From Oculina patagonica (Eukaryota): DNA of 64,000 nt. The stretch is taken from positions 11,222,001-11,286,000 of the forward strand of contig NC_135770.1 of the NCBI RefSeq assembly GCF_052425735.1, in the 5' to 3' direction. The translations under genes and the position numbers were made by a program. Shown in pieces: positions 15,880-60,500 of this stretch. Each line of letters starts with the position of its first letter. The stretch's first letter is position 1. The notes under the pieces are model-generated. The model had not been told where the DNA came from and ran no database searches. It saw nothing but the letters and a program-made list of their open reading frames with translations.

Positions 15880-16009
15880 CTTTATGTTGAGTTTGTATGA
15901 GGTGTCAGTGCTACCTGCGTTTGATAGTCCTTTGTAAATTGTGGAATTCAGGTGCTGTTGACCTTACTGATGCGTGTAATGATTATGTCGTCTCATTCAG
16001 TTATCCAGC

Positions 16010-16017
16010 TTTTATAT
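16010..16017 (-). promoter_or_regulatory. Putative TATA box of the FGF gene
   Basis: ATATAAAA on the minus strand ~130 bp upstream of the ATG at 15879. Confidence 0.5.
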
Positions 16018-19810: not shown

Positions 19811-19978
19811 ATAGACCTCTTTCATAAATGGGGTCTAATTGTTATTCTTAGTGATGTAATAAGCCCGTAGCCCGCAAAGATAAAAATAAAAGAATTTTTA
19901 GTCAAAAACGAGGCGGAAGGCTATTTGCAGTGCACAAAAGAATAATTATTATGCTCGCCATTTATGAAAGAGGTCTAT
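19811..19978. mobile_element. Short MITE
   Basis: 21-bp TIR ATAGACCTCTTTCATAAATGG / CCATTTATGAAAGAGGTCTAT. Confidence 0.75.
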
Positions 19979-20008
19979 TAGTCTGACATTATCAACTTAT
20001 AAATTTAA

Positions 20009-20353
20009 GGTGGCTCTGCAACCGCTCCGGAGAAATTTTTTAAAATTTGCAAAATGATGTACCTTAACATGCTGATCATTATTTAATAATAAGAAATTGA
20101 GGTCACTGGACTCGTTTTTGAGTTATTAACGCTTGAAGCTAAATAAAGGGTGTTTAACAGGTTATACCGTTGCTATGGTTACCAGTGAGGTCAAGAAAAT
20201 AACCACAATTTGTATTTCAATGACTGGGCATTTTGTTTGATACCATGTATGTAGTGGTAGCTTTATATAAATATTTGTAGCACTAACCCATCGAAGTTAG
20301 GAGACTCAAAGTATGAGAGCGGAAAGTGCTGGATTCAACTGTTTTGGGCCTCC
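20009..20353. mobile_element. Kolobok-like non-autonomous element
   Basis: TTAA on both sides, with termini GGTGGCTC...GGGCCTCC. Confidence 0.6.
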
Positions 20354-21924
20354 TTAATAAAAGTGAGAAAGATTGTGACGGATAGTGCGCCGACGACAAT
20401 TTTGAGAAAGTTATGCGTCATTTTCAGTGGCTGTGCGTCACACGAGAATTTTGTCCTCTCACTGAATGGATATTGCAAAGGAAAATTTAAAAGCTGGCCG
20501 CCCGTGGACATTCAAAGAGTTAAAGCACCTTTTCAACGAACGCCCACATTCTTTTTTAAGATCGTTCCCGCCTTTTTCCTTCTTAACATGTGTACATGTG
20601 TTGTTTTAAACTTAATACGTGCTTGTTAACTCGCTGAGCCAATTCATTACACAACATAAACATAATCTTCTTTCAACTTTTTACACGGTAATGAGACTAC
20701 AAGCCGACCAATTTATAATAATTGGATGAAAATCGAAATAAAAAAAAAACTGACCTGCTAAAATTAGAGAGGTCGTGGTCCTAGGAAATGTTTTCAATTC
20801 AATTATTTAGAAATTGTGTGTAGGTGTGTTTGGTTATATCACGCATGAAGCTGTGAAACTTAGTTAGCACTTGAAAGAATAAATTTGCACAGTTGGAAAA
20901 CAAAAAAAGTATGCACGTTTTGGAGTGATAATGCGATTTAAATTTGACATGGAAGAATTTAAACTTACTCAGTCTTGCCAACCTTCGCGTGATTCCACTT
21001 AATTTCCGTTCAAAAAAATACCCGCTTAATAGGGGGCCACGGGTATCAACTGACTACAGCGCTATAAAAAGAAAAAGTGACGATAATTTTTAAATTAATT
21101 TCTCGTGATTTATACGGAAAAAGAACAGTGATACGTCAGAGGTTTCTTGTATGACGTATATATGACTGAATTTTGTTTACGATCGTACGTAACTAGGCTT
21201 TGTAATAAATTGGCATTGGACCAGTTATAAAGTTCAGAAAAGCTGGTCAACACTTGTCGAATTCTCTCTCTCCAGTTGATTATCCACTTAGCAGTATTAT
21301 ATCTTACTGTTATTAAGCCTATTCAGAGTGGTTTTATCAGTGATGACGGGCGAAGGCTCGTTAAGCCAGGATATATGTCAAAGTACGTAATTGTGGTTGG
21401 CAAAGTATACGAGGAAAAAAACGCGCTGAAACACAAGACTTGCGGTTTGAATTAGCGGACATTGTGTAAACTTGCGGTGCATTCCAAACTGTCTAAGCAA
21501 CAAGACTTTCCAGTGGGTTAAATTGTTAGAAAATCATAGATATTTCTTGGAGATACAATGCTTAAAGGAAGTTCTGAGATCGTGAGAGTTAAATTGATTG
21601 GCAGTGCAGAGTTGACGCAAAAAACTCGGGCAAACTTTGTCATGTCCTTGTGTTTCTTGTGTATTGTACTCGCGCCGAATTTAGGTATAATCGAGATAGC
21701 ACCGAAAACCTTTTTTTTATTGGATTTCAAGTTTCAAGTGCATGATGTTTTCATTTCAGACCTCAGTAAAACAGTTGAACTTGAAGAGGAAAAACAAACT
21801 GTTTCTAGCCCTTCTTATAGATTGGAAGGAAGGCTTATTAACTTAGTAAAAATATTCAGTTTTTGCATCAGTGTCTCCTTTATTACGTAATTTGTTTTTG
21901 TTAATTTACGCACATCCCAAATCC

Positions 21925-22855
21925 TTCAAGGTTTTAATCTCATTCAGTGTCAATAAAAATATTGTAGTTTTGCTATGTTTATAACCAAAAAAGACCTGAT
22001 AAAATTTATAAAATTTGAATCTGTCAGCTATCAAAAAAGTACATACACGTTAAAGAGGGTCCGAATGGGGGGGTCCACATGTCAGTAGTCAGTTAAAAGT
22101 CTATTACTTAGTCGGTTGTAGTTATATTTTTCACCCTTTGTCGCTAGTCGGGTGTGAATTGGAGGGTCCTCATGTCGGTAGTCAGTTAAAATTAAATTAT
22201 TTTGTCGTTTGTCAGTTGTATTTTTCGCTCTTTGTCGGTAGTCGGTTAACCCCATTCAGACCCTCGTTAAACTGTAGCCCGTAATTCGGGCGCGTGTGCG
22301 CTTTGAGGTTTTTAATCTCATTTAGTGTTGATTAAAATAACGTAAATTTGCTATGTTTATAATAAAAAAAATAAGACCTTAAAAATTTCTAAAATGTAAA
22401 TCTGTCAGCTATCAAAAAAGGGACTTTAAAACTGTAGCCCGTAATTCGGGCGCAAGTGTGCTTTGAGATTTTAATCTCATTCAGTGTTGATTAAAATAAC
22501 GTAAATTTGCTATGTTTATAATAAAAAAATAAGACCTATACAGTGTCAATAAAAATATCCGGTGGACTTGCTATGTTTATAACTGAAAAAATTGACCTGA
22601 TAAAATTTTAAAAAATTTGACATGAATCTGCTAGCTATCAAGCGTATATACCAGAAACTGTAGCCCGTAATTCGGGCGCGAGTGTGATTTGAGGGTTTTT
22701 TAATCTCATTCAGTGTCACTAAAAATATCCTGGATTTGCTATGTTTATTACCAAAAAATAAGACCATATAAAATTAATAAAGGGGAATCTGTCAGCTATG
22801 AAGTGTTTATATGTAGAACTGTAACCCGTACAAATTCGGGCGCGAGTGTGCAAAA
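21925..22855. repeat. Degenerate ~155-bp tandem repeat (~5 units) interrupted by a MITE at 22055-22265
   Basis: Recurring TTTTAATCTCATTCAGTGT...TTGCTATGTTTATA...AATCTGTCAGCTATC...AACTGTAGCCCGTAATTCGGGCGC. The MITE has TIRs GAGGGTCCGAATGGGG/CCCCATTCAGACCCTC and GTTAAA duplicated on both sides. Confidence 0.8.
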
Positions 22856-25800
22856 CGCAAGGCGAGGATCGAGCGTGACTGCGCGATCGAGGAGAGTGGA
22901 AACTACTTTCTTAACGTAAAATCTTGATTGGTCAGAATTTCAGTAGGTGTGAATAACTGACTTTGTAGAAAAAGATTGTGATAAGTTGTTAGCCCTAATG
23001 CATGCGATCTAAATGAACTCCCAGCAATACTATCTAAATTTATTTCTCGTACTAGGTTCGCGCCATAACAACACTACAAAGCTAGACCATAAGAGTTTTC
23101 GCTACACTAGGAAGCAATACATTATATATGTGTTGGCCAAAGAAGACGAAAGAGCCATTACATCATAAAACTTATCAAAGACGCATCATAACTGAATGAT
23201 GCTTAAAAGTGACAGTGGATATGTTTTCATATCCGTATGGATCGTTCAAATGCCTGATCAGACAAGAAAGAAAGGTAAACGAAAATCAAAGTTTAACTAC
23301 GAAAATCTGCTGACTGGCATGTGCAGTACATCAACTCTCGCGCGCTGTCCATCGAATTTCCACGATGTAAAGCCAACAAAAACTCTATTACAAGCGTGTG
23401 CAAGATTATCGCATAATTTTTCAAATTTTAATCTTTTATTAGAATACGTGTTTAAATTAACGCGTGGTTTGTTTCCAAATTAACGTGTAGTCTATCCAAA
23501 TTTAACGTGCAATTTGTGGGGGTAATTTGTGTCTAAATTAAGGGGTAACTTGTGGCTAAATTAACAAGTAATTTGTGTCTAAATTTAGAGTAATTTGTGT
23601 CTTAATTAACGCGAAATTTGTGTCCAGTTATTTTGGTCATTTTTAGGCGCGGTTTAGATGCTTGTCCATCACGGAAAGTCCATATCCATTTGCAAAAGTC
23701 CGAGGAATTTGCTCATTTTGAAAGTGCAAAGAATTCTGGAATATTTTAAAAAAGGAACCGAATGTTAAATCCGTGAGCTGCATGTTATACAGGCTAGGTC
23801 TGCGGTACCATGGGAAAGTAACAAACTCATCGAGAAGGGATCCGGAAACGATAGGCATAGAAAGCAGGCCAAGTAACTAAACTTTGGATTTCTTGTACGA
23901 ACTATTTGCCTGTCGATCTATTTGAGGCAACAGTTCTATTTTGCCACTCAATGCTATCTTTACTTTTCAAAAATAATCCAGTCCCCAGCTTTTCTTTGAT
24001 TTTCTGTCGCCAGCGCTTACCAAATAAGGGGAAAATACTAATTGAAAATAACGCCCGTTTTCAGTACTTATATATCTTTTTTTATACCTGATGCAAGAGG
24101 ATATTTTATCGCCCGTGACATAACAACACGCGCGCTCGATTTTCCCTGTGATACGCCGAAAATCAAATATTTAAAAAGAAGTGCTTATTAAGTGCATTCT
24201 TATGTTAACCACAGATATTATACAAGAAGATCGATTTATATTTGACCACATAACATAGTCCTTTTATCGTTCGAATCAGTAACAGAGGAGTTGAATTCGT
24301 GTTCACAGGAAATACTGACCAAAAATAGGAAATTCTCGTACGATCTTCGATTTATATCGGAAAGATAGATATAACGAGAAAGTAACAAAGTATATTCAGA
24401 AGAATAAAAGCTCATCTGACCAGATTTCTAAAAAAGCGATGGAATAACTTGCCACGTGATTGCGGTGGGGGGGGGGATTGCGGTACTTGCTGAAACTGGC
24501 CCGAAACAAAATATTGCCCCGTGGCGCTAGCATTCAAGACATCTCTGTATATCTCTTTCTTCCACCAGACAAATTCAATATTATTTGTTGTACCTAGTGA
24601 AAGAAATATCTTAATTGTTCTCTCACGTTCGGCCTAATTAATATGTCGGTAACATTGTGTTGACCTGTCTTTGTCAAGCGTGTTTTGACGTGCTTACACT
24701 CTTTCAATGCGCCGGTTTTTTCCGCCGGAGTCGTGTAAGATGTTCGTTTGTGGTTCGCCGAAATTTCGGTGTCTTGCAAAGTGAGAAGTCTGCAAAATTC
24801 CGTTATTAATTCCTGCGGTAGCTAAAATAGTAAGTGATATATAATCAGCCGGCTTTTTGTGAATTTCAGAAAGAGATTTTTATTTTCTGTTTAAGTACCG
24901 CTCTTCAGTATTTGGTAGATCAATAACAAAAGAAAGCAAGATTTTTAACACATGGCTCGTCGGCATTTTAGATTTCATATAAAGCTCACGAAGTTAACCA
25001 CGTGTTAAGCCACCTTTGTTGTCTACGCGCTTATACACAAGAAATGCGTTAATCAGAGAACAAAAATGCGGTAAAAAGTGAACAAAAAAAGGGGAAAAAG
25101 ATTAACATGTAACAACTTTCTTCAACTTTTCTTCCATGTCACTCAGTTCCAATTCTAAAGTATTAATTCCCTAAACTGTTACACCTGAAAATGTTCAATT
25201 CTTGCGGTAACGTCGTCGTTTCGTTTACGTGATCAGGAAACTTTGGCCAGCCCTTAGTTTAATTCAGCGCTGTTTAAAATCAAATGGGACTCGAACTATA
25301 AGAAACAAAACCCTAAGAGATTAGAGACATTATTGTATGTTGTGAGCCTGGGTTTTCCTTAGGTTCAGCTATTCCAAAGTTAGTTTAACAAACCTGCGGT
25401 GAGGTGAAGGCATCATATACGCTTTGCAATGAAGAAAATAACTTTGAATACTCAGTATTCAGGGCCGTAACAAGCAAGAGGCAAGACGAGGCACTACCCT
25501 CGTCTAGATTTAAACCCAAAATTTAAAAAAAAATTTTTTTATTTGGGAAAAAAATTTTTTTTTTTTTTTTTTACCCCCCCCCCAACCTATTTTTTTTTTT
25601 AATACCCCCCCCTTTTGGTATAAGCCAAAGTTAAATTCTTTTCAAGGCAGTATTGTTTTGAAACTAGACAAGAACGAGACTTATTAATTAACGGAAAAGT
25701 TGTTGAATTGAAAGTTACAAAGACTTTGAAGTGGAAAAAATGAGGCGCATAAAACGAACCTGTTTCTCAATTACTTATCAGACAAACTCTTATATTCTTA

Positions 25801-26175
25801 TTTAGACAGCATTGTTATAACACTTGGAAACTTGAATAATAAAAATAGTCTGAGTTACAATTAATGTCGCGTTAACAAAAGTCTGTTGTATACTTTAAAA
25901 CAGAAAGGTAGCAATTTTCTTCAATTTTAGATAATTGTTATATTCTTATCTAGACACTATTGTCAAAACACACGACATGAACAATAAAATGGCCGTTTAA
26001 GTTACAATAAACATCACACTAGCAAAAATTAACTGTATATTACAAAATAGTAAATTAGCAGAATTTTCAGACAGCCGCTTTAATTTTTATTTGGACAGTA
26101 TTGTTAAAACACGCGCCATCAACAAAATTGGCGTTTAAGACGAAACAAAAGTCGGAGTAGCTTAAGTCACTGAAG

Positions 26176-26183
26176 ATATATAA
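26176..26183 (+). promoter_or_regulatory. Putative TATA box of Pinhead-like gene A
   Basis: ATATATAA ~60 bp upstream of the ATG at 26239. Confidence 0.55.
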
Positions 26184-26238
26184 GCGCTGTAACATCAGTC
26201 ACATCTCATTTACGCCTAAAGACGACCGGGTTCTAAAA

Positions 26239-29200
26239 ATGTCTCGATTAGTTTTTGTTTTCATGTGTCTTTCATCAAATGTTCTTGGAGGGACAGAAGA
26301 ACGGCGGATCAGTCTTAAGCAAGGTTTGTCTGTCTTAGTCTTCTTTCTCGTCGTTTTTCAAATAGGGAATAGCTACAGTTTTTGTGAATTACTTTTCGTC
26401 ATTTTTACTGTCGTTTCAATTTCGGCTTTGCGTGTGTGCTATTTACCCGAGGTCCTTTTTTTACCAGCACGCGGGTAAAATCAAACAAGTACCGTTCGTG
26501 TTTTTGAGGCCGCAAACATGTCTTAATTTAGATGATCGCGTAGGTAGATTTGATCCCAGGTATTAAACCAAAATAGTAGCGACGTTGACTGAAAAGACCT
26601 CCCAAACTCTACAAAAACAAGAGAATTTTTGATTATCCCGGTGTTAGTGGAAAAACCCGACAGCGACGTGTGGATAAGCTTACGTTTGATCTCACATACA
26701 GTAGACCTCATCTTATACGCCGATAACCTAGCCAATTCGACCACCTACTTATAACAGACACCTTTTCGGCCTGAAAGATGCTCAGTCTGAACCTCTTTAT
26801 ACAGCCGACTTTAATACGATCAGATTTCGATGGCTAACTCGTTGGTGGTCATTAAACGGGATTTAACTTTAATGTCAAGTGGTGGGCACGTTTGTTGTCT
26901 GTTGTGTTTAAACATGTTCTCATGGAAAAATCGCGACTACAACTGTATGTATTATCATTAACCTAATCGCCGGAAGCGGCTTAAGTCTGTCTTTGTTTTT
27001 ATAATACAGTTTACTTCTAAATCCACTTAAACGCGGCTGTTTAAACTGCCTTAGTGTCGGTAGTTGAATTCGAAAAACGCTTACTTGTTTTATTTATTGA
27101 CTTAACTCCAACACTAGCAATTTGTTTAAAGCTTGTGCAAGGATTCATTGAATTTTTCGTGTTCTATTGATGAAAAAAACGTTTTGAGTTGCTTTGGTTG
27201 GAAAACTTTCCAATCGTTTTTTTGTTGAAGAGGTAGATAAGTATTCAGTAAAATTATAAATGATCAATTATTACAATCCCTTTAAACAAATTAACCGAAA
27301 ACGATTGCGGATAAAAAGGTAGAACCCAGTAGAACACGCAATACCTCGGAGGAGAAAACTCAACTCCTTCTTATAGTCGGGGTATCGTGTTTGCCTAGTT
27401 TCTAGGCTCAATGAATCGCGCCGTCACGGATCTCTGGTGACGTGCGCGGTAAAGCGGGAGGAGGGGAGGGGAGAGGAGGGACTAGAATGTACCACACATA
27501 GGTCAAGTGATTGCAACTGATCTAGCCTGTGTAGCAGGCGTCTGTGTAGTTAATTTAGTGCGTTTAAAAGAGAGCGCGATCGCGAGAAGGTCAAGCGTTT
27601 CCCATATGCGCGCTCAAAAGTGCGGCGTCTGCTACGCAGGCTACAACTGATCATATAAATGAGTAATAATATATGATGAAATAGAATAATAAAAAAGTGG
27701 CTAAAATAACTATTCTTCTCCATTCAGATGGCCGATTGACTTCACTTCCCGACAGTGCTATTGGCCTTTGGCTTCAGCAACAAAACATGGTTAAGAGAGT
27801 ATGCCACAGGGAGACCACGAGCAGAGTGCACACAGGTGACTACTGTTTTTCTTACCACTCCAGCAAAAAAAATTGCTTGATGCATGTATTGTGTTCTAGA
27901 TAAGGGCCGAAATTCTGGGCGGGGCAAATCAACAGTTACGGAACTGAATTGTCAGAAAAAACTCTGTTTGTTGACCTTGGTTGATGAATACGTGAAATAC
28001 AGTTGAAGGAATAGAGGTGAAGGAAGATACTAGATGCTAACCTCAACGGAACATTGTACTTAACATCAAGTGTTTTGATTCATGAAAGTCAGTTAAATGA
28101 TGCTTAATATCGCTAGAGTTGTTTGTCTTCGCTTACACTGAGTGGTAAACATACAACTATTTCCCTTATTACTGAAACAGATAAGAGGCGCCACTGTCGA
28201 ACATCAATATCGGATGCTCAACGAAAAACATTTTTGATGATAGATTTCAAGTGGTTGGACTGAATAGGACTGAACGTTGTTCACTTATCAATAGCAAATG
28301 CCAGCGACTTAAAAGTTCATCAAATAACAAGTATCCATGAAAAGTTTACGAAATCTACGCGGAGAATAATAAATAACACATGCAGATGCATTTAATTTAA
28401 TTTTTAAAACAATTCAAGTGCCCAACACTTGACGGTAGCTGTTCAGACTAGGTTCTAGTTGTTTTTCTTTGATCGTGGTTGATATTGGAGTTAACACTTA
28501 AGCAGTTCTGTTAGTTAACTTAATTATTTATTCACGAATAGTTTATAGACGTTTGAAAGAGAGAGGTTGACAATTGTAATGAGGGGAACGGATGTTTTCA
28601 AGTTTTGCCTCTCGCTGTAAGTGAAGTTTATCTCTAGCAATATAAATGTATCAGGAACTCGGGAATCAAAACACTTGATCATAAGTACAATTTGGGTTTT
28701 CAAGTACTTCCGTCAATTCCCTTCATGATTAAAGAATTCACGTACTCTGTTCTAGGAATGGGACAAACATTTCAAGTGGCCAATTGTAAAGCAAGTCTTG
28801 TAGATGCCGCGAGAGAGGTGGACCACTCGCGAGGAGATAAGGTATGCATCCGGAACTTTTTACATTAAAGATGCAAAGGCTACTCTGATCGCTTTAACGT
28901 TGCTATGGCAACCAGTCTTTCCTTTGAACCAAAGCAAGCGTTGCCTTAATCCGGCCAGCTAGTTAAAAAGGTTTTTTCCGCTATCCCAGCACAGTAAGAT
29001 GTTTTAGGAACTAAACAGCAGAGATTTTAATTGAGAAAAAGACCACGCCCAAGGTAAGGCGGCGTAATAAATAATGTTCAGTTGGTTAGACCTCAGACCG
29101 AAAAAAAGGTCATGGTCTCCTGTCCAGGCTTCAGTAGAAGGGCTGCACAGAGTAAAAAATAGAGAGAATAAGAAAGCAGAGGAAAACGAAAAGGAACGGA

Positions 29201-45519: not shown

Positions 45520-48500
45520 ATAGACAAGGAGGGCGAGTAGTCTAATTGTTTTAGTAGAAACTCTAAAGAATTGCAGTCCAAAACCTACAATTTTATGTAC
45601 TTTTAAGCCAAAAATCAAGAAAAAATCACCGTTTAAAGAGCAACGCGCGTGCGATTGTTTTCTATCGGCGAATAGAAATCAATGGGAGAACCAATCAGAT
45701 TCGCGGATTTCCAATAGAACACGACTGAGTTTCTACTAATAAATGTTAGAAATTGATTGGCCAGGCAATTAACTGTCAATGATCATGATGATTATTTTAC
45801 AGTTGACCAGTTGTATCCAATGGATATCAAAATTGTTGCTGCAATGGGTGATGCCTTTACAGTAAGTAATATACAAAATTGATCTTCTTTAAATCAGTTG
45901 ATATTGAAACAATGTTTAATTTTTTTCTTGGGCATTATTGTTGTAACATCCGTATTTTTAATTTATTTTACTACTTATTTTTAAGTTGGGACTTGGAGCA
46001 AGGGCCACATCGATAAATGGATATTTTAACGAATACAGAGACATCTCGTGGAGGTACATAGTAAATCATTTATTTAATTATATTGTTGTTTACTCATACC
46101 GTAATCAGCTACAGGGTTTTCAAATCAAGCGGGTAATCGCTGGAGTTCTACCGGCTTCTTGTTGATGTGTCACCGATTACCGTATTTACTCAAATAAGCG
46201 CCGCGGCGCTTATTAAATTTTTTGCGCCTCCAGTGTGGCGCTTATTCGAGGGCGGCGCTTATTTCAAATTTGGACGCAACAAAGAATTTTATCTCCTACA
46301 GTAATTTAAAATACCTTATTATAGAAAATTAACGATACATGTAATTTACGTGAATTTCAAAAATTAGCATTAATTTTATGTACCTTAATTTATGTCATTG
46401 TTAATTTAAATCACACTATTTTACAGCATTGTTATTTTAAGAGACATTTATTTTCTGCAAAGTTATGTTTACACGTGATCTACTTCTCCGTCAAAGCCGC
46501 AGGAATAATAGAGGCAGCACAGGCGGCCCAGGCGTGATATGTGATCAATGTGATAATAATTTGGCCGATTGCGTAAGTCTGGTTCAGCCGTTTAAGACAA
46601 TGTATGAGAAATCTTCAAAAATTGCTCTAAATATTACATTTGTAAATGAACTGAAATAAAAATGGCTTACCTCTTGCAGGGATCCATATTCGTTTTTTCT
46701 CCAAGTCGTCAGCCGGGCAAGTATGCAAGATGACATACTTGCCCTGGCAAAATTTTACTTGCCCGTTCAAAAGTGAAGAATGGCGTTGTTATTATCACAT
46801 GCATGTAACACTGTGTATACATAAAATCAAGATTCAAGACAACATAAATAAATTTTGATTCACACGTATTTGTTAATGAGACTTTTTACTTGTCTACCTT
46901 GGCTGCCGGTTTACAAATGTCACAAAACATCACGCCCCCAAGCGGCTTGTGATGTTGCGGAAGCGTATGATGCGGGCACAAATGAAAGCCAGGGCCTTTT
47001 CGACTGCAACCACGGAAGAAAAGAACGCTTTTTCTCTTCTTATTCATATTTGGTTTGTTTTTCTGAAGTGTTAACATTGCTTTTTTTCTTCTTTGCTGGC
47101 GGTGCCAGACCAAGATAATGGCAATTTTTTATCAAAACATCAGCTGATGCGATCGCCTCGTGTTTTCGCGGATGCAGCTGCAGTACAAAATATCAGCGGT
47201 TGAGAGCTTGAAAATTGAGCCTGCAATGATTTCATTGATGGAAAATACCTATGGTGGGTGATTACCGTCATAATTAAACTTTGGATTTTGTTACTTGTTA
47301 TTGCATTTTGTTTTACAATAAGTTGCTTGTGTGTTTGAATTTTATGTTGGTTGTATCAATTTTCTGTCAGAATTCAGAAATTTTCGCCTAATCAAATTTT
47401 CGGTAACTCTAAACTTTCTAGTCATTTGAATTTTTCAGGTTGTGCCAGTTTTCGGGAACTATTCCAATTTCAGACTGTTTTCGTTTTTCGTTTCTGGTGT
47501 ATTTTCTGCCAGTAGTTCGAATTTTCCGACACATTCAATTTTCTGCCAGTAGTTCGAATTTTCAGACACATTCAATTTTCTGCCAGTAGTTCGAATTTTC
47601 GGACACATTCAATTTTCTGCTACTACTAGTTCTCGAATTAGCCTGGGGACTAGTGGGAGGAGTGGAAGTCACCAGATCGAGGTAATTTATTTCCCGCCTT
47701 GTTGATCCAAGATGGCGGATAGAGAGCCTTCGTCAAATTTTTCCCAGGCCATAAATCTTCTGCGCCAGGCAACGGAAATTCTTTCATCAAGTGAAAATGA
47801 AAATAATTCGTCGTCATCAACACCGTCTGGACCTTCAAACGGTAGTGGAAGGGCTCAAAGTGCCACTCATCCCGCAGATCCCGGTCCTTCACAAGACCGT
47901 GACGCAGCCGTCATGGCAAATTTCAGAAACCTTTTTTCACCGTATCCGGCATCTACTAGTTCATCATTTTCCCGTTCTCAGAAACCCTCACGGCCATCAA
48001 AGCGGGGAAGTCGACCAAGTCCTTACTACAAACCCAAAGAGACATGGACACACGATTTTTTTTGTCTTGCTAGTCCTCAGCAGGATCAAGTTCCATCGAA
48101 GTCTCAGAAGCTCGAATTGCAAGCTGCTGGCTTAGGAAGAAAAAAGGTGGTTCTTGGTAACAAAGACGGGGCAGTAGAGGTTAGCAAGAAGTTGGAAACT
48201 GCATACCCTAGACTGAAAGCCGGAGGTGGATTTGAAATATTGAGGAGTGGAATTGGCAGCAGTCTTGCTTTTGTACCACCACCAGCAACAGGATACTCTG
48301 TTCCTTACCTGAGGGATCAGGCAGGTCTTGGACAGGCCCTGGCCTATCTACGGCCATTGCAAGCAGAACTAGATGTTTCTCCCATTTCAACTGATATGGT
48401 GAGTGCAAATAGCATTTATAAAAAAATTGTAGTGGTGGATCATGGCTAAAGTCTTTCAAAAGTATATTTTATTACAAATATTATCTTTTTAAGAACTATT

Positions 48501-51500
48501 CGCTTTTTTGTTTACCCCTCAAATTTCTCTTGGGACGATTGTACGTCATTGTAAATCCCAAGAAAAATTGAAAACAATGCTTATGCAAAGATTTTGGGGG
48601 GTAAACAAGATGTATTATGGGAATGGTGAAAACAGCGAATAGGAAAATGTTGGAATCAAAATAATGACATACTGTTTACATTATTATTGTTAGGCTTCTA
48701 CAGCACAAGCAAATTCAAGTGTCCCTCAAGTGAACTGTACAACATGCGGGTTGCAGCTTAATGTGACAGAAGTCAGGTCCCATCAGCAGATATGCAGCAG
48801 AGAGGATGTAGATGCTGAAATAGATGCCCCTCCAGCACAGCGAATAACTCACATTGAAATTTCAGATTCTCATGGGGTAATCTATTTACTTCTTAGGTAC
48901 TAGACATCAATTTCATGTATAGGGGGAGGGGATTTTATTTTTTCATTGACCCATCACTGTGCTAAAAAGTACTATAAAAATTCCCTTTTCCCTCCATCTC
49001 CCTTGCCCCTCTTCCCTTCAGTCAAAAGTCACCTGTATAAAGACTTACAGATTATGTTCAGTGTGTACTACAGATGAAGCTTTTACATGTCAATACTTTC
49101 AGATTATTTTGATGATTTTTTGGAAGTGAATATACCTCATGTTTTGTTGCCCCCCATTGAAGCATGTGACAATACTTAGGAGATCTGATTCTTTATGTTG
49201 TTGTAAACATTGTTAATACATTGTAATTGATAAGCTCATGTCAGATTATTGACAAAAGCAAACATTGTGTGCAGTCAATGGAGATTATTTGTAGAAATTT
49301 TTTAAGGAATATCTTTTATTACTCATCAGAGTTTATCACAGATGGAAACTGCTGAGAAGGAAAGCAAGTCAAATGGTAACATATTGTTATTAGCAAATAT
49401 ACAGTAACGATAAAGATGAGATGTTCTAGTATGGGACAAAGAAAAGTTCTGAGTGCCCGACAGGGATCAAACCCATGGCCTCCTAGATACCGGAGACTCA
49501 GAATTTTTCTTTGCCCCATGCTCGTGTCATGTAGAACATCTCATCTTTGTTATTTATTTGCGAACTTAAAATTTACCATCTTTATTATTTAATACACAGC
49601 CTCATAATTATTTCCCTCATAATAATAAATTACCACCCAATGACCCTTTATTTGGGGGGGGGGGGGTGAAATCTGGATGTTTTCTGAAACAGCAAGTATA
49701 CGTGTATTAACATTATTTTGTACCTTACAAATCAAGATATATCAAAGCTCAAGGAGATGTTTCCAAGTGAAACTGAAGCTGCCCTTGAAAATGTCCTGGA
49801 CTTCAGCTTAAATGTGGAAGATGCAATTGATACTCTTGTAAACAAACCATCTGGTCAGTACCCATATGGAATAATATAATTGTGTTCTTGTCTCATGTCA
49901 GTGGGATCTACATTTTGTAGTCGCATGTAGTATATATAGACATTCTAAAGTAAAATTCATTTGTACAAGATTTTTTTTGTCACTCTTATTTCTATGTTAT
50001 TTATTTCAACCTTGAATTTGGAAAACGTTCTTATTCAGTAGACAAGAAAAGATATTAGTTTACTCATACTCCTTTTTTAGTTTTGTTCTTGGTTCAAATT
50101 TCCTTTCCTTTTGCCCTATACTCATTATCGTACATTAATAAAAATAAAAACAAAAGAAATGAAAATTTAACCAAGGATGAAATTTAACCACAACATTAAT
50201 CTATTTAGCCTAAGCTGGAAAATTATCAGTTGTCATATGTATACTTAAGGCATGGAGGGGGGAGGGGAGGTATTAATGGTAGATAAGGGTGCTGTTCTTT
50301 TAGGTAGGAGTGCTATCCCTAGAGGTAGGGTTCAGGCTGTATTTCCTATCACAATGCATTATTCAATTTTATTGTTTCTGTCGCGGAATCTTTACAAATC
50401 CCGCAGTCGTGGTCAATAATCAATGAGGACTGTATATCTTCGCTACAGTTTTATTTGCGGTGTTTCATTCCAAGTTCTTTCACAATTCAACAATCTAGCG
50501 ATTCGTCAATCTAACAATCCGGAAGTTTTTTCCGTTAACAATTCTAACACGATCTGATCTTACAATATACTCTACTTCAATTTTAATATCCTGTCTTGCA
50601 AAACCAGTAATTTTCCCATGATCACGAGTAGTGTAAAATCCCAAGCCTAAGTATTGTAATAATACTAAATTTAATTCCTATTTCACAATAGCACGTTCTC
50701 TTCCCTAATTTAGATAGCTATACGCGTGCAATTACATCAGTTCTCTTACAGCAATACATAGTTAATAGAGGGAAATGGTTATGAAGCCCGGGAAAGTTTT
50801 TTGTTATAGGTTATTGTTCGCTATTTTGAGGGTTGACTGTGCACAAAACCTGACAAAATACAAAAGGTGGTTACGTGTGTTCATGCAACTAACCAATTAA
50901 AACATTTGGATTACGTAACTCATGCATAGTGTATGAGAGCAAAACAAAAGATGTGCACGGTCATGGACCTTCCAACCTAAATTTTGGCCCTTATTGTTTG
51001 CTCCTTTGATGTTTGCCGGGCTTCCAAACCATTTCCCTGTATTAACTATGAGTAATAAAACTACGGAGTTTGTTTGCATTGTTGTGAAATATTATGTCAC
51101 GAAATCTACGTGTTACAAGCTTTTTGTTTAATAGTAATCAGTATAATAGTTAATATTTTGTGGCATTGCGTTACGGTCTAAATTAATGATCAATAATATG
51201 TGTAATATTTTTCAACAGTTTCTACAGTTGACTGGGAACCTCCCCCAATGCTTCAGCCCCGAAATGTATCAGCAACAGAAGCAACAGGAGGTATGTATTA
51301 TTGCGGGCGACCAGAGGAGCCCGTAATCCTAATCTCAACGTTGTTTTTACGCATGCGCGACATGTATATAGCCAGAACCTTTCCCGATTTTTTCTTCTTT
51401 CACCAAGAACGAACGACAAGAATTTTTTAAAGATGGCCGCCGCGTTGGCCAGTGTACTGAATTTACAAAGCCAAAGTTTCGCTTCATTTGTGTGTTAATG

Positions 51501-54500
51501 TCCATTTAAAAGTTTAAAAATTGAAAGAAACAGTTTAAAAGAATACGCTATTCTCGCTATGATGTGAAAAGGGGAACTGCAATAATTGTAAGAAGTAGAA
51601 CAGCAACAACAAAAGTAATGGTGATAAAAGTGGTAGTGACAGTGACATTTACTATTGCTTGGACTTGTTTAAGGTATGCCTGCTGATGACATTCTCGAGA
51701 CATTTAAACGAAGTGTTGTTAAAGAAAATGGTCCAACTATGGCAATTACCTTCAACCGATCAAAGAAGGCGATTCGGGAACTTTGCAGAATTTACAAGAA
51801 CAGCTCCGGTAAGCTCTCAAGACCACCAGTGGTGTACTTTGTTTCCAGCAGTGGAGAGGATGAAGAATACGAGGAGGAAGCAGCAGATGTGGGTGGACCT
51901 TTGAAGGAGTTTCTTACAATTGCTACACAAACAGTGCTTTCATCCACAGATCCTCAACTATTTGAAGGGGATGATGACCACAAACTGCCACTTCACTCAC
52001 AACAGCTGGTCCTACATGGCTACTTTAGAATGGTAGGAGAAATAATGGCACATGCCATCATCCATGGACAGGTGTGGATTATTGGTTTAGCAAAGCCTGT
52101 GAAAGAGTTTCTGTCTACTGGTTGTGCTGAACGAGCCTCACAACTTGCTTGTATAGAAGATGTTGCAGACCTAAATGTACGTGAGGTGTTGAAGCGCATG
52201 GCTAAACCTACATGTAATGAAGAAGATATCACTTCCTTGAACTCAGAGGATATGGTTACTAACTTGATGGGTGAAAGTGGAGTTAGTGTAGCAATCTTGA
52301 CTGTTCATAATGCGGCACAAGTTGCTTATGAAATCATGGTGTATCAAGTGGTACATAAGAGAATGAGAGAATTGGAGGAAATGAGGAAAGGCCTTGATAC
52401 TTTACAGCTTAGTACCTTGTTAAACTGCCATCCCAAAGTAACCTCTTTGGTATTTCCCACGGTAGAAGAGGCTGCCATTGATGCTGAAGTGTTGCTAAAG
52501 AGGGTATCTATGGATCCCATCGCTACACCAAGTATCAGAATCAACACTGCATACATATTTCTTCTCGACTACCTTGGAAAGGTGTGCGAGAGAACAGAGC
52601 CACAGGGTATGTCACAGTAGTTAAAGAGAAGTGCATGGTGCTCTTTAATAAATAAGTAGCAATGATACATGTGCCAACAAGTGCTTCTGATTTTCAAAAC
52701 ATTTTTTTTGTTTATATACTGCCTAGAAACAGAATGGAATTTTGATCCAATATCATATTGTTGTTACTTGCAGAAATTGGGATTAAGCCAGTGTTGACAT
52801 TTATCACAGGCTCCCCACTGATGCCAACGGAAATAGTCGTCAAATTTTTGCCCGAGGACAGCAAAAGGTTTTCCCTTCCAGATCCTGGCACCTGTACCAG
52901 GGAGCTAAAGATTCCAACATGTTATACAAATTATGAAGAGTTTCAGTCAGCATTTGATGCGACTGTAAGGGTACAGGGGAAAGGGTATGGAAGAGCCTAG
53001 TCATCAGTATATGGGGTTGCGAATTAGTGCAGTGAAAGGGAGTTGAAGTAATTCCTTGTTAGTGGAGGCCACGTAAGTTATGTTGTTGTTAACAAGGCAG
53101 GATGTGCATTCCCATTACAACAACGTACTACCATTTGCAACAAGCTACCAAGAATATCTAACTTTTTCCGCATCTGTTCAGACACAAGACGTAAAAGTTT
53201 GTGTATGCAAGCTACATGTACTGCACTTGTCAAAAGTTTTCTTTGCCCATTTATATGGTAAATTTGTTTTGCCCAGTAATACGAGTAAATGATTTTAATC
53301 TAAGTGATTGAGAAAGCTAGACAAACTTGCATTTCATAGTTGAAAAACATGCAAATAATTTAGCTCTTTATGGAAGCTTGAAAGTCTGGCAGTGTTAGTA
53401 GAGATCATCAATCACTAACTTTCTATCCAAAATACTGGGTAATGGTTATTTGTAATATAAACGGCATAGCATACTCTTAAGGCGGCGAAATACGAGATAC
53501 AAAAACCCTCAACTTGTGTCGCAACATTGTTGCATTGCCAGTTGAACGAGTTGTTGACTGTATTTATACCGCGCGCTCAACTTGTCTCGCAACAAATACC
53601 AGTGCTGCAAATTACAGTAACATGTTGCACAAAGTAGAACAGAGTTCTACTTTGTGCAACAATATTTTTCAACTTGCAACACCGAAAATTGTCGCGAGTT
53701 AGGTTTAACGCAACAACTCCTTCAACTGGCAATGCAACAATATTGCGAGACAAGTTGAGGGTTTTTGTATCTCGTATTTCGCCGCCTTTACTCAGTGACT
53801 AACTTATTCTACTACAATGCAGCAAAAGTAGTTTATTGGCTATCCATCAAAAACGTTTGACTGCTCTTGAGCCAATCAGATTGTTAGGTATCCTAACTGC
53901 CTGTCGCTTATTTAGTCTAGTATCATTAGTTCATGTTGTTGTTAATCCCACTGTTGAAGAAATTGAGATGATGTTGTTTCAAATGGTTATTAATTGTACT
54001 TAAAACAAAGTCTCTACAAAGTTGAAATTACAAAAATTTGGGATAGTAACATGTGCATAACAGGCCACAGGTCAGTTAATCTCAGTCACTTTTTATCTCA
54101 GTTGTTGTTAATCCAGTGCTGTCATTGTTACAGTTGGCTCTTGCAGAAACATGTTATAACATGTGCATAACAACCCACAGGCTAGTTAATCTCAGTCACT
54201 ATTTTTCGTAGTTGTTGTTAATCCAGTTCTGTTATTGTTACAGTTGGCTCTTGCAGAAACATGTTATGACATGTGCATCAGGTACCTATGATAAAGGTTT
54301 CTAGGATTTTGATAATTGCTCTTTTATGCACTGGCAATTATCCATTTGTGTTTTTATGATTTGAATTTGCACTGTTAATAAATAAAAGCCATCTGTTTGT
54401 CATTAGTTTGGTGTCTTTATTGTTAGAAGTTCTGCCTGCACAAAAAATGAGAACAAGGCAGTTCACTTGTTTCACTACTGAATTTGTCCAAACAGGTCAC

Positions 54501-57500
54501 AAGAAATTACAGTCCTTTTGATGTGATTAGCTTGAAGGACAGTTAATAATCCATCGATGCAGCAGGCAATGTCATAACAAAATTTAATGCTACTTACTTT
54601 GACCACAACATTTTGAAAAAAACTGTAAATTCATGAAGGCTATTAAGAGAGTTGAACCCTAAATATTCAACTGCGCTATTTTATTCTTGACCTGAGAAAC
54701 AGTGCATGCAAAAATTCACAATATCCAGTTCAATCAGTAGCATGGGCAAGATTTGTACAATTGGTGAACTGATCAGCTACTGTGCCCTTTCAATAAAAGT
54801 TAAGGCTTGAATATATATGTCTACACCTTGAAATTCGGAATATTGGCAAGGATCTATTGTTCTAGCTAGTTCCTCGTATGTTTCCAATGGAAATGGAAGT
54901 GAAGTCTGTGGTATAACCACTGACCCATCTGCACTGTGACAATGGCCATCCCATGTCTCTGAGGGTGCTGGACCTTCCCAATCAATGCCATAATCTTCAA
55001 TATCTGCCTGTTTAAAAGAAAAATTTATTATATGCTGTTATCTATTGAAATTCTACTGATAATAAATCTTATATACTCTATAATAAGCAAAGATATTGGC
55101 AAAGGTTTAAAACCTTTTTTTTCAATAGCTGATTTTTTTTGTTTGAGAAGATAAATGTTACACTTTTCAACAAGATACCCAACACCTCAAATCTGTCCTA
55201 AAAAGCTCTGCTGCACATCATTCTTTCAACTCTCTGATGAAACACCGTGATGTATGAAATGACTTACCCTTTGGTGTAGTTCTTGTACCACTCTGTGATT
55301 TGATCTTTGTAACTGCATCAAACCATTGACCCACATTTGGACAGGTGTCATATTTCTTTCTGTGCTAATGGGACCATTGTTGTGACCTGAAGAAAATATT
55401 CTTAGGTGCCTGTTGATTCTTGGCAAGTACACAAAATGTAGTGCAAATATGTGAATTTCATTGGAAGGATCTAGAAGTGAGCACTCCTCCATATGGTAAA
55501 ATAACTGGTAAAACACATATGTGCACCCAGTATACAGATCACGCCACAGTCTCTCAATACGCTGGTTATGCACACTTCTGCCAGCAATGTGACTTCCTCG
55601 GTTTGGTCCTCTTAATGGATGTGACAGCATGAACCAGGCAACATCGCAGTTTTCTCTACCTTTATCAGATCTGACCCTCGAAGGAAGCCCATAGGTCTGC
55701 ACTGCATTGTGAAATAGTCTGTACACCGTAGAAGCACGGTTGTTTGTGCTACATTGCAAAAACACGATCATTCTTGTGAAACCATCGATTCCTCCATGGA
55801 TAACAAACCTCCACCTTTAGAAGTCATATAAAATATATTATGTTGATTTCGTTGATTTCTTATTATATACATTAAACTCTAAATCCTTAGACATTAGCAA
55901 ACTCCCAAGTAAGAATTACTAAAAAATGCATAAAGCAAGTTTCCATAAAGAATTCAATCAATAGCATCAATAAAATCCCCCATACTGTCAAGAAGTTCAA
56001 GTTGAGTAAGCATAGAGAATGGGAATAGAGGATAACTAAAAAGACAAGTAGACAAATGCAACAGTGAATAAATGGGCTGAGGGGGGGATAAGTGTTGGTT
56101 TTTATTATCCTTTTTTTGGTTTTTATTATCCTGATAGAAATGACATAAAATAATAAAATACTGGCAATTTAGAAGAAAAAAAAAATGGACAGATTCAATA
56201 ATTAAAGGAATGATACCTTATTAGCTTATGGTTACCATCTATATGCCACAACGCAAGTGGTCCATATACTTGGTATCGTCTTCTGTGTATTGTCCTAAGC
56301 TCAAGCGCCCGTAGTAGGACCCCAGCTGGATTGACCCTCCGCATTGCCTCTCTTATTCTACACTGTTGGATTCTCAAACCTCTGCTCATCAGAAATCCAG
56401 TCATTCGCCTGTACCCGGTGTTTGGGAACTCTGTTAGGATGTTCTGAATCAGCTGGTCGAGTTCTTCGTTGTCAATGAGTGAGTATGTTGATCTCACACT
56501 CAACCCAAACTCGGACAAACGTCTTTCAATAGTTCGGACACTGACGCCTAGCAAAGTTGCAATATCGACGACAGAGAAGCATCTTCCAATCAGAAAATCA
56601 AGTTGATCTTTGGGAATTGAATATCTAGGACGTCCACGTTGTCCCGTAAAGGCAGTGGCTGGTGATGAAACACCAAAATTATCTTGACTTCCAATAAGAC
56701 AGTCTCGTGCACATCTAATTAGGTTGACAATTTGTTCATCGATTCCATACAAATCCACAACACGAGCCATTAAACTTTGCAGCCAATCCAGCCTAAAGTG
56801 TAAGGCGTCCACTGTATTTGGGTCAAGACCTCCTTCAATTTGCCGAATAATATTAAGTAAAAGCTCTCGCAAATATCTGAACGATTGTAGCTCTTCCTCA
56901 GAAGGAATGACTCTATCCGCCATCTTGGATCAACAAGGCGGGAAATAAATTACCTCGATCTGGTGACTTCCACTCCTCCCACTAGTCCCCAGGCTAATTC
57001 GAGAACTAGTAGTAGCAGAAAATTGAATGTGTCCGAAAATTCGAACTACTGGCAGAAAATTGAACGTGTCCGAAAATTCGAACTACTGGCAGAAAATTGA
57101 ATGTGTCCGAAAATTCGAACTACTGGCAGAAAATTGAATGTGTCGGAAAATTCGAACTACTGGCAGAAAATACATCAGAAACGAAAAACGAAAACAGTCT
57201 GAAATTGGAATAGTTCCCGAAAACTGGCACAACCTGAAAAATTCAAATGACTAGAAAGTTTAGAGTTACCGAAAATTTGATTAGGCGAAAATTTCTGAAT
57301 TCTGACAGAAAATTGATACAACCAACATAAAATTCAAACACACAAGCAACTTATTGTAAAACAAAATGCAATAACAAGTAACAAAATCCAAAGTTTAATT
57401 ATGACGGTAATCACCCACCATAAATACCGCATCAGCCAAGATGGCGGCCAAAATTATGATTTTATCACGACAGAAAGTTGCAAATTATGTTCTGTTTTCG

Positions 57501-60500
57501 AAAAGTTATGAATGGATGACAAGTGGTCAGAACGCAAGTAACTCATAAGAAAACTTAATAATTGTTTTTTTTTTTCCATTAAGTCAAACTTAAGTCGTCC
57601 AGCGGACGAGTTTATTTAATCTTTTGGTCGTCCATACGATGTTTTAGTCGTCTCGGACGACCGGACGACTGCGAATATGGATCCCTGCTCTTGTATTTCT
57701 TGCATTATTTTGCCTTCTCTGTGTTCCTAGGGTGGGATTTAGGCCATTTAAGCGATTTTCTCTTTCGACGGTTTAGCCTTCACTAAAGAAAAACTAAAGG
57801 CTGGCGACCCCGTGGGCCAACGGCCCGCACTCGAAGCTCCATAAATCCCACAATAATGGTTGAATCTCGCCAAAATCGTCTCACAGTAGCCGTCGATAAT
57901 TCTTCTTTCCATTTGCTTATCCTGAGGTTCCAAGGTTTATCGCAGCCGCCCGAAAAACGCTCGTTTTCGAGCGCCAGAAGTCCATATCTGCTTCGTCGAA
58001 ATGCGAAAGCAGTTATCTTGGGTACGGGATTTGAAATTCTAGCTTAGCGACCGCGCCATCGCAACAAAGTGGCCCTCGACCGTGGAGAGGCACAGGGAAA
58101 TCGTCATCATGCAAATTGTACCATCCGAGACCAAGCCGGGAACAAATTCCTTCGAGGAGTGTAACACGACGGCTAGGAGCTCTAAGCCTTGCGATTTGTG
58201 ACATGTCACTGCATATGCCAATACATTTGCATGATGACGATTTCCCCGTGCCTCTCCACGGTCGAGGGTCACTTTGTCACGATGGCGTGGTCGCTAAGCT
58301 AGAATTTCAAATCCCGTACCCAAGATAGCTGCTTTCGCATTTCGACGAAGCAGATATGGACTTCTGGCGCTCGAAAACGAGCGTTTCTCGGGCGGCTGCG
58401 ATAAACCTTGGAACCTCAGGAGAAGCAAATGGAAAGAAGAATTATCGACGGCTACCGTGAGGCGATTTTGGCGAGATTCGACCATTATTGTGGGATTTAT
58501 GGAGCTTCGAGTGCGGGCCATTGGCCCACGGGGTCGCCAGCCTTTAGTTTTTCTTTAGTGAAGGCTAAACCGTCGAAAGAGAAAATCGCTTTTAAAAATG
58601 GCCTAAATCCTACCCTAGGAACACAGAGAAGGCAAAATAATGCAAGATATACAAGAGGTAAGCCATTTTTATTTCAGTTCATTTACAAATGTAATATTTA
58701 GAGCAATTTTCGAAGATTTCTCATACATTGTCTTAAACGGCTGAACCAGACTTACGCAATCGGCCAAATTATTATCACATTGATCACATATCACGCCTGG
58801 GTCGCCTGTGGAGGCAGTGGAAAGAGCCAGGACGGGATGTATTCCATCCCTGGAACCATTCACTGAATATTAGTCACTATTTCGTCCATTTACATATCTT
58901 TGTTGTATATGGTTTATCAGAATGAAACCTCAAGTTCTGTTTTTCAGGACGTTGTTGTTTTGTCTTTTGAATAGCGCAGGTTGCAATAAAAATTACTACG
59001 CATCCAATTCGCGTTAATTAACTGCATGTAAGCACACACCACACGAGAATTCGCGTTAATTAAATGCATGTTAACATAAATTTTCGACAATTCGCGTTAA
59101 TTTTATTACGCGTACAATTTGTTCGCGTTGTTAAAATGCTTCATTATATTCCTATAATAAGGTAGCGTCTTTTAATTGCCAATATCCGTCTTTTGCTGAG
59201 ACAGAAGTGACACTACCTGTCCTGGCAAAGTTCGCGGCCTTCACAACATTTACAGAACTATGTATTGTAAGAATGTTGAATAGAAAAACCAATAGGCGAG
59301 CGGTAAAACAATCACTTTGAACTTCAAAACATCGCTCTTGATGAAGCGAAATGTTTAAGGTTGTTTTACAGTTGCTTTGTAGTGCCATTATTAGTAAAAC
59401 GTAATTCCTCGAATAAGCGCCGCATCAGGTCTGCGGCGCTTAATCGGGGGCGGCGCTTATTAACTTTTTTGTCCCAAATGCAGCGCTTATTCGAGGGCGG
59501 CGGTTATTCTGGGGCGGTGCTTATTCGAGTAAATACGGTACTCTGTGACTGGTCATAGCAATCAGCATCCCCTAGCTCAGCAGCCCCTAACTTGTCGCAG
59601 TCGCCTACTCTTTTAGTTGCTGAGACCTACTTCAAAACATTTTGAAACCCCTGCAGTTGTAACTAGTAGAAAGTGTTACATGTTAATATCAACCAGTTCT
59701 GCACAGGTTATATAAATAATGTAGCAACTTAATAATGTTTGGTTGTGTTATAGTATTGGAGGAGCAAATTATTTGAACCAAACAACAACTATACCAAGTA
59801 AGTGTTACATTCATCAATTTAATATGTTTTTATTTTGTTACAGTCAACGCGCTTCACGCATGAACGCACAACTTCAAACATTCATAAAATATTTCATTCA
59901 CCGATTTCATTTTCAGTTAATGAAATCATTCTTCGAAACTTCAATCGAACAATTGTAAGTCAAATTGAAAGTATTTAAAAGCCCATGGTAAAATTGAAAA
60001 TAAGACATCTGACGTTATGGCAATTGATAATTTTTTTTAAAATAATTTTTCGGCTGTGTGCTGTTTTTTTTTCGCGCGGGAACAAATTACATGTAAAAAT
60101 GAATGACTGTGTCACCGCCGCATTCACGTAGTTATGCGCTCGTACATGTGAAGTTGGCTTTACCATACCAGGGTCGATGTGAAGGGATTTCTTCAAGCGA
60201 ATGAAGTTTAGCCTGCGCCAGCTGAATGTCATCCTCTAACGATTCGACTTCACGCTGAACTTGTTTGGATGTTTTAACGCATCCTGACTGTCTTTCGATG
60301 CCGATGGCGGGATCAGTGAGACGGACTTCCTGTTAGAACTTTGAGTGGAAATTTCCCGAGAATTGTTCTTTTCCAAGCTATTGTGCACTTGAATCGACAA
60401 ACTAAATGCTGTGCCGGTCTCTTCTTCTACAACACACTTTTGAAGATGCAGTTTCTCCTCTTGGATGGCGCTTACTGGGATTCCCATTCGAACAAACTTA

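Follow-up and report, generated by a model that had tools for sequence, protein, structure and literature searches.

Analysis of a 64,000-nucleotide stretch of the genome of the coral Oculina patagonica (NCBI RefSeq assembly GCF_052425735.1, contig NC_135770.1, positions 11,222,001 to 11,286,000 of the forward strand; hereafter the window, position 1 being its first letter) revealed a 10,173-bp element at positions 47250-57422. The element is bounded at both ends by inverted repeats and contains two intact, convergently oriented genes, one on the plus strand for a protein with a HECT-type ubiquitin ligase domain and the other on the minus strand for an integrase-like DDE transposase. In our interpretation, to which we assign a probability of roughly 0.8, this is an autonomous-looking transposon of the IS3EU/GingerRoot type with a HECT ligase as its long-standing partner gene; the ligase, active and equipped with ubiquitin-directed modules, would be made alongside the transposase and would aid the propagation of the element. 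Because the same convergent pair is found in complete elements of a hydrozoan and two teleosts, and the HECT gene bears the signature of purifying selection, this gene is regarded as a long-kept partner of an animal IS3EU lineage and not a recently captured host gene. A preliminary description of this stretch, made from the letters alone, had treated the HECT gene as cargo; the comparison across species points instead to an ancient, fixed partner.

Structure of the element and its insertion

The outer boundaries of the element are defined by the following features.

47244-47249, unstranded: left copy of the target site duplication (TSD), AATACC, a perfect 6-bp match to the right copy
47250-47724, plus strand: left terminal inverted repeat (TIR), which opens with TATGGTGGG and holds the upstream region common to the two genes and the ATG at 47712 together with the first four codons (MADR)
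47501-47620, plus strand: 37-bp subterminal tandem repeat within the left TIR, 3.2 copies, core TCGAATTTTCNGACAC
56911-57422, minus strand: right TIR, which closes with CCCACCATA and holds the transposase ATG at 56923
57015-57171, minus strand: the same 37-bp subterminal repeat within the right TIR, 4.2 tandem copies
57423-57428, unstranded: right copy of the TSD, AATACC, identical to 47244-47249

The termini of the element read TATGG..CCATA. A gapped alignment of the left TIR (approximately 475 nt) with the right one (512 nt) shows 2 substitutions and, in the right TIR, one additional 37-bp tandem unit as the sole differences, corresponding to about 99% identity, and the inward limit of both repeats is ATGGCGGATAGAG. 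The clean 6-bp TSD and near-identical TIRs that had been noted in the preliminary description are thus confirmed. Given that just 2 substitutions have accumulated across approximately 475 nt of TIR, the insertion is likely to be recent. The HECT and transposase genes begin at a common ATG inside the TIRs and share their first four codons, MADR. Taken together, these features characterize a young, complete and apparently autonomous cut-and-paste transposon. Within the 64 kb of the window, seven occurrences of the 16-nt core of the tandem repeat were counted, against 0.18 expected by chance, and all of them lie inside the two TIRs; these subterminal repeats are candidate binding sites of the transposase. 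No second copy of the element was seen in the window, and no tRNA genes were seen inside the element.

Transposase and classification of the element

The transposase gene consists of three exons on the minus strand (related loci are designated here by L numbers).

56217-56923, minus strand: exon 1 (aa 1-236), with D229 as the first residue of the catalytic triad and a helix-turn-helix near aa 118-136
55268-55814, minus strand: exon 2, encoding the catalytic core of integrase type, in which D286 and E323 lie (Pfam rva_4, E = 2.7e-72; rve, 26 bits)
54777-55007, minus strand: exon 3 (C-terminal 76 aa and stop codon), kept at 33-38% identity in L004, L007, L009 and L010

The three exons form an open frame of 494 aa with an intact catalytic triad (D229, D286, E323; spacing D-56-D-36-E), in agreement with the spliced, intact DDE transposase that had been proposed before. 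Both splice junctions are confirmed by the homologue from Clytia, which aligns uninterrupted across them. No HHCC zinc motif was found in the N-terminal 225 aa, upstream of the core. IS3EU elements are recognized by TA..TA termini, a 6-bp TSD and an integrase-like DDE transposase that lacks the HHCC motif, and IS3EU and GingerRoot form a single lineage (PMC10045372); the ends of fungal IS3EU elements conform to TAYGG..CCRTA (PMC12730594). The window element combines an rve-type DDE transposase devoid of HHCC with TA..TA ends and a 6-bp TSD, so that all the published features are present; on this sequence evidence, we classify it as an element of the IS3EU/GingerRoot type, and the earlier label of "IS3EU-like" agrees with the published definition in termini, TSD length and transposase type.

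The HECT gene and the domains of its product

The ab initio model of the HECT gene comprises seven exons on the plus strand with an intact frame of 754 aa.

47712-48398, plus strand: exon 1 (aa 1-229), a disordered N-terminus followed by a ubiquitin-like beta-grasp domain at about aa 110-220 (nt 48039-48371)
48694-48876, plus strand: exon 2 (aa 230-290), with a C-x2-C-x11-H-x3-C finger at 48736-48795
49330-49375, plus strand: exon 3, 46 nt, located between the exons of the finger and the CUE domain and required for the frame
49737-49853, plus strand: exon 4 (aa 306-345), CUE domain, with the MFP motif at 49757-49765
51219-51290, plus strand: exon 5, a linker, as an exon model whose borders are kept in L007 and L001
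51674-52606, plus strand: exon 6 (aa 369-680), encoding the larger part of the HECT domain (Pfam HECT, 23.1 bits, profile positions 9-177 of 306)
52774-53000, plus strand: exon 7 (aa 680-754), which completes the HECT domain on its C-terminal side and includes the stop codon (Pfam HECT, 21.2 bits, profile positions 234-303 of 306)

The AG/GT borders of exons 3-7 are conserved in the related copies L007 and L001, as is the length of exon 3. The open frame of the second gene that had been described previously stands, whereas its count of 6 exons and 730 aa has to be revised to 7 exons and 754 aa, the 46-nt exon at 49330-49375 being needed. The evidence for the domains of this protein was drawn from its separate exons and from full-length homologues. 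The resulting order is a disordered N-terminus, the beta-grasp domain, the CCHC finger, the CUE domain and the HECT domain, with the last two well supported and the identity of the finger as UBZ4 suggestive.

The assignment of the second protein as a HECT-type E3 ligase with a bilobed HECT domain is well supported by profile and structure comparisons. Single-sequence searches with the pieces of the window protein yielded weak matches to solved structures, but the family profile matched solved HECT domains over the full domain length, with E values down to 6e-22. In the AlphaFold2 model of the Clytia homologue, the predicted local distance difference test score (pLDDT) exceeds 90 in the HECT domain, and the model matches HECT structures with TM-scores up to 0.69 by target. 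The catalytic Cys that had been pointed out from the sequence is C720 (52893-52895); it is kept, with its TC..L.lP surroundings, in all complete relatives, along with the aromatic residue at position -4 from the C-terminus, which is Y751 in the window protein, Tyr in cnidarians and Phe in fishes.

The identification of exon 4 as a CUE domain, proposed earlier on the strength of the MFP motif (aa 313-315), is likewise well supported by sequence comparison. The Pfam CUE scores of the window protein and its relative from Stylophora are 19.0 and 20.3 bits, respectively (cut-off 21.1), and the latter protein is named "CUE domain-containing" in UniRef. A search of a five-sequence profile against the PDB returned CUE domains for 8 of 10 matches, including Tollip, Vps9, CUEDC1 and, as the best match, SMARCAD1 (6h3a; E = 2e-5), and the corresponding region of the Clytia model consists of three helices. 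The domain thus resembles the CUE domains of Vps9, Tollip and SMARCAD1 in the MFP motif, the three-helix bundle and the profile matches to solved structures. Certain CUE domains bind partners other than ubiquitin.

The finger (aa 244-263) is plausibly of the UBZ4 type, considering its pattern, its predicted fold and a set of sub-threshold matches. No variation of the C-x2-C-x11-H-x3-C spacing was seen among 20 aligned finger segments, which come from 12 relatives, or in the further relatives scanned, and the Clytia model has a beta-beta-alpha arrangement in this region (pLDDT approximately 73). In both respects, the finger is similar to the UBZ4 fingers of RAD18, WRNIP1 and FAAP20, but all its matches fall below the family thresholds: for the finger of the window protein, the zf_UBZ score is 12-13 bits (cut-off 25.6), and a profile of the family finds the fingers of optineurin, RAD18, WRNIP1 and Pol eta with E values of 0.035-0.26. 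Across the members, the best Pfam match of the finger is zf-C2HC_2 (2.9e-5), and other matches are to the autophagy-receptor finger, zf_UBZ, UBZ_FAAP20 and the XAF1 fingers, all sub-threshold. Of the UBZ4 finger claimed in the preliminary description, the spacing pattern stands and the predicted fold fits it, while the matches to UBZ families stay below the thresholds. To our knowledge, no described architecture joins a UBZ4-type finger and a CUE domain to a HECT domain.

The beta-grasp domain ahead of the finger had been missed. Its region (window 48009-48398) was modelled by AlphaFold2 with a pLDDT of 86.5 and a predicted TM-score (pTM) of 0.77, and all Foldseek matches of the model among PDB entries and Swiss-Prot models are ubiquitin-like beta-grasp domains, including Ras-binding domains, the FERM F1 lobe of SNX17, the C-terminal domain of RING1B, SAMP1, SAP18, UBX, coilin and the ubiquitin-like domains of USP7. 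Because these matches have weak E values, none better than 2e-3, we assign the domain to a fold and not to a family. A language-model search retrieved weak ubiquitin-like look-alikes and suggests that the domain precedes other HECT domains as well. Cnidarian and fish members of the family alike have kept it.

Several additional repeats lie within the element or adjoin it. An insertion in the spacer resembles a miniature inverted-repeat transposable element (MITE):

53479-53788, unstranded: palindromic MITE-like insertion with 78-nt arms, 96% complementary, in the spacer that separates the HECT and transposase genes

HECT intron 4, which is approximately 850 nt longer in the window copy than in L007, contains an inverted repeat (50757-51050) with 39-nt arms around some 290 bp that is probably a small nested MITE. 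A 110-bp tandem repeat (2.1 copies, 90% identity) is found at 54047-54278, downstream of the HECT gene, and a foldback with 276-nt arms, 96% complementary, at 57841-58500 adjoins the right side of the element.

Conservation of the HECT/transposase pair

An exhaustive protein search with HECT exon 6 retrieved 395 related proteins; named members of the family come from Clytia hemisphaerica, Saccoglossus, Glandiceps, Ptychodera, Sanderia, Astyanax mexicanus, Gouania willdenowi, Desmophyllum pertusum and Stylophora pistillata. Three of the loci examined contain complete elements:

L004, Clytia, 9491-27721: 18,231 bp, TIRs of about 170 nt, TSD AAAAGG
L005, Astyanax, 9579-22415: 12,837 bp, TIRs longer than 553 nt and 100% identical, TSD CTCATC
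L006, Gouania, 9501-29964: 20,464 bp, TIRs of 705 nt and 100% identical, TSD AATAAC

All three start with TATGG and end with CCATA, and each encloses a HECT gene and a convergent rva_4 transposase on the opposite strand. In the Astyanax element, both genes begin exactly 422 nt from their own element end and have an identical first coding exon, MEGEEERQQ, which is the same arrangement as in the coral. Young copies with near-identical or identical TIRs and both genes apparently intact are available from the coral, Astyanax and Gouania. Convergent HECT/transposase pairs were also identified in L002, L009, L007 (a close relative of the window family) and L010 from Stylophora. The exceptions are L001 and L008; the former has no transposase within 10 kb, and the latter runs out at the edge of its contig. 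Inverted repeats and duplications were looked for and not found around the older copies L002, L009 and L010; in L007, inverted repeats are visible, and a clean duplication was not found.

The ratios of nonsynonymous to synonymous substitution rates (dN/dS) for the HECT exon of the window copy and four relatives are 0.28, 0.45, 0.33 and 0.13, values that indicate purifying selection on the HECT gene. The preliminary description had considered that other copies might lack the HECT gene or have it pseudogenized; other copies keep it under purifying selection, and some are decayed, as is the rule for transposon families. The domain architecture varies in one position, a swap that had not been noticed before: the cnidarian proteins consist of beta-grasp, finger, CUE and HECT domains, whereas those of fishes have, between the first finger and the HECT domain, a second finger of the same spacing (CPIC..P....H.S.CGE). 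The exchange of one candidate ubiquitin-binding module for another in the same place fits with selection for a function rather than for a particular module.

The related copy in L007 (L007:6658-16840, ENA ERZ25071797) is a mosaic. The protein encoded by its HECT exons 3-7 is 83-97% identical to that of the window (94% for exon 6), in contrast to just 38% for HECT exon 1 and 55-66% for the transposase; its TIRs include an ATG (ATGGCGGAC). Such a mosaic suggests an exchange of modules among different IS3EU families.

In hemichordates, HECT domains of the same family are found in tandem genes that also encode fibronectin-III (fn3) repeats (L003:10001-16283 and L011:10001-24882; proteins P0014, P0022, P0024 and P0031), with no transposase found nearby at these loci. 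In a quick unrooted tree with long branches, these domains fall beside the HECT domains of cnidarian transposons (SH-aLRT, the Shimodaira-Hasegawa-like approximate likelihood ratio test, 92), a weak indication that the fn3-HECT genes may have arisen by domestication of a transposon gene. We draw no direction of transfer from this tree because its branches are long and its root is insecure.

Possible functions of the ligase and alternative explanations

The TIRs provide identical upstream regions and start codons, one for the transposase and the other for the ligase; in the proposed scheme, they would serve as twin promoters, so that the two proteins would be co-produced. The HECT ligase is predicted to be catalytically active, and the finger and CUE domain would bring it to ubiquitin or ubiquitylated proteins; the ligase, made together with the transposase, would then help the element propagate. 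Fingers of the C-x2-C-x11-H-x3-C pattern are best known from DNA-damage-tolerance proteins, and strand-transfer complexes of the integrase type, being very stable, have to be removed actively, like MuA by ClpX. The mechanism that we tentatively prefer, as one possibility to which we give well below even odds, is that the ligase works where the transposase has damaged the DNA; by ubiquitylating repair factors or the transposase complex there, it would allow the stable complex to be removed and the gaps to be closed.

A number of observations weigh against parts of this interpretation. The gene model of the window copy is ab initio, and its HECT domain is split by an intron into pieces that each score just under the Pfam cut-off (23.1 and 21.2 bits). 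The match of the finger to UBZ4 is sub-threshold, with zf-C2HC_2 as the best Pfam family, and the same CCHC spacing is also found in families that do not bind ubiquitin. For G2E3, the reviewed protein nearest in fold, an inactive HECT domain has been reported from in vitro work. Finally, certain copies have deteriorated: L001 has no transposase within 10 kb, an LTR (long terminal repeat) retrotransposon in an intron and a CUE motif changed from MFP to SFP (L001:3328-3444), and the HECT exon of L010 from Stylophora carries a frameshift (L010:11701-11703).

The three roles suggested in the preliminary description, namely degradation of host silencing factors, marking of target chromatin and turnover of the transposase, are speculative. 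The main alternative to lesion clearing is the removal of host silencing factors. Under this scenario, which we consider rather unlikely as the main job of the protein, the ligase would tag silencing or restriction factors of the host for degradation, similarly to viral E3 ligases. The closest solved CUE domain belongs to SMARCAD1 (entry 6h3a), and CUE1 of SMARCAD1 binds the repressor KAP1 rather than ubiquitin, which we count in favour of counter-defence. Moreover, fungal transposons, IS3EU elements included, carry TET/JBP genes that have been interpreted by the authors as anti-silencing (PMC12730594). However, we found no substrate-recognition domain that would point to a silencing factor, the recognizable modules being ubiquitin-related. 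The type of finger, with RAD18, WRNIP1 and FAAP20 among its weak matches, is best known from DNA-damage-tolerance proteins, which also speaks against this scenario.

Alternatively, the HECT domain might be catalytically dead, in which case the protein would serve the transposase as a scaffold or as an adaptor that binds ubiquitin. Its divergence from solved HECT domains (15-20% identity) and scores near or under the Pfam thresholds in some members are compatible with such a loss of activity; nevertheless, we regard it as improbable, given that the catalytic Cys, the TC..L.lP motif and the aromatic residue at -4 are kept from coral to fish and that the HECT exon evolves under purifying selection.

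Even less likely is that the HECT gene is passive cargo, that is, a host gene or gene fragment captured by the transposon as in Pack-MULEs and contributing nothing to transposition. DNA transposons do capture host genes, and related HECT domains are present in the apparently host-owned fn3-HECT genes of hemichordates, with no transposase nearby; furthermore, the accessory genes of fungal IS3EU families vary (e.g., TET/JBP and alpha-kinase; PMC12730594). Against this view, the same gene is found in the same orientation in complete cnidarian and teleost elements, the start codon is built into the TIR in both the coral and Astyanax, the dN/dS values are 0.13-0.45 and the full domain architecture is conserved.

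That the window contains no single element, but two unrelated neighbouring genes bracketed by chance repeats, has a practically negligible probability: beyond the general abundance of repeats in the region nothing speaks for it, and it is refuted by TIRs of approximately 475 nt that are 99% identical, by the same ATG start in both repeats, by the perfect 6-bp duplication that flanks them and by the same structure in three other species.

Returning to the partner-gene interpretation, its most far-reaching version would be that an animal IS3EU lineage has possessed a reader-writer E3 of its own since before the split between cnidarians and vertebrates, or has spread it between them; that the ligase is required for transposition, acting through ubiquitin marks at lesions and ubiquitylating the transposase complex or host factors; and that host HECT genes, among them the fn3-HECT genes of hemichordates, are descended from it. 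We consider this combination of claims doubtful at present. Should the ligase be needed for transposition, the element would exploit the ubiquitin system of its host in a manner new for mobile DNA and would offer a defined, testable two-protein system.

Comparison with known systems

By fold, the closest reviewed protein is G2E3: in a search of the Swiss-Prot AlphaFold models, ranks 1-4 were occupied by the G2E3 proteins of four vertebrates (E values 3e-19 to 2e-17), and in a profile search of a 5.8-billion-protein set with a mixed alignment, which returned 3 proteins, a true fish G2E3 was matched at E = 3.8e-8. However, the HECT domain of the transposon protein is only 16-19% identical to that of G2E3, and the N-terminal architectures differ. 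G2E3 has PHD-like zinc domains (zf-HC5HC2H) where the transposon protein has the beta-grasp domain, the CCHC finger and the CUE domain; neither the window protein nor its relatives gave a match to zf-HC5HC2H or PHD, unlike the true G2E3 (P0170), which has these domains. For this reason, orthology with G2E3 was rejected. The best rank of G2E3 among reviewed proteins by fold accounts for the names of the relatives, which in cnidarians, hemichordates and many teleosts are annotated as "G2/M phase-specific E3 ubiquitin-protein ligase-like" or "uncharacterized". The teleost family extends over dozens of listed species, including zebrafish, medaka, stickleback, cod and carp, and most of its members are called "uncharacterized protein LOC...", at times "G2/M phase-specific E3 ubiquitin-protein ligase(-like)". 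This HECT family accounts for many of the multi-copy "uncharacterized LOC" and "G2E3-like" models of teleosts, cnidarians and hemichordates, in line with the earlier suggestion that such annotations in coral genomes may be genes carried by transposons. Because the HECT-family models in the elements examined are transposon genes, gene counts and analyses of family expansion can be distorted.

With IS3EU/GingerRoot elements, the window element shares the integrase-type DDE transposase lacking HHCC, the TATGG..CCATA ends (TAYGG..CCRTA in fungi), the 6-bp TSD, the long TIRs and an occurrence in corals, Hydra-type cnidarians, fishes and acorn worms. It differs from the descriptions in the papers searched in two respects: these include neither a HECT gene nor any other gene of the ubiquitin system, the described accessory genes (alpha-kinase and TET/JBP) being fungal, and a TIR-embedded start codon common to both genes is absent from them. 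A second gene in IS3EU as such is not new, given the alpha-kinase and TET/JBP genes of the fungal elements (PMC12730594). A literature search that included full texts found no mention of HECT or ubiquitin in papers on IS3EU/GingerRoot. Zebrafish, the source of the founding Repbase IS3EU family, has relatives of the HECT protein, so that the HECT open reading frame may already be recorded in Repbase. What is added here are the complete elements from three other species, the TIR-embedded start codon, the swap between CUE domain and finger, the beta-grasp fold, the selection estimates and the comparison with G2E3.

More generally, we found no description of transposons with their own ubiquitin ligase. 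Among DNA transposons that keep a gene for a second enzyme, one finds ULP1-like proteases in MULEs (Mutator-like elements) and OTU proteases in some Helitrons and Ginger elements. The element of O. patagonica resembles these and the fungal TET/JBP carriers (PMC12730594) in maintaining an accessory enzyme next to the transposase. It is distinguished from them by the predicted activity: the enzymes of the other elements are proteases or modify DNA, whereas that of the coral element would be an E3 ubiquitin-conjugating enzyme with ubiquitin-reading modules.

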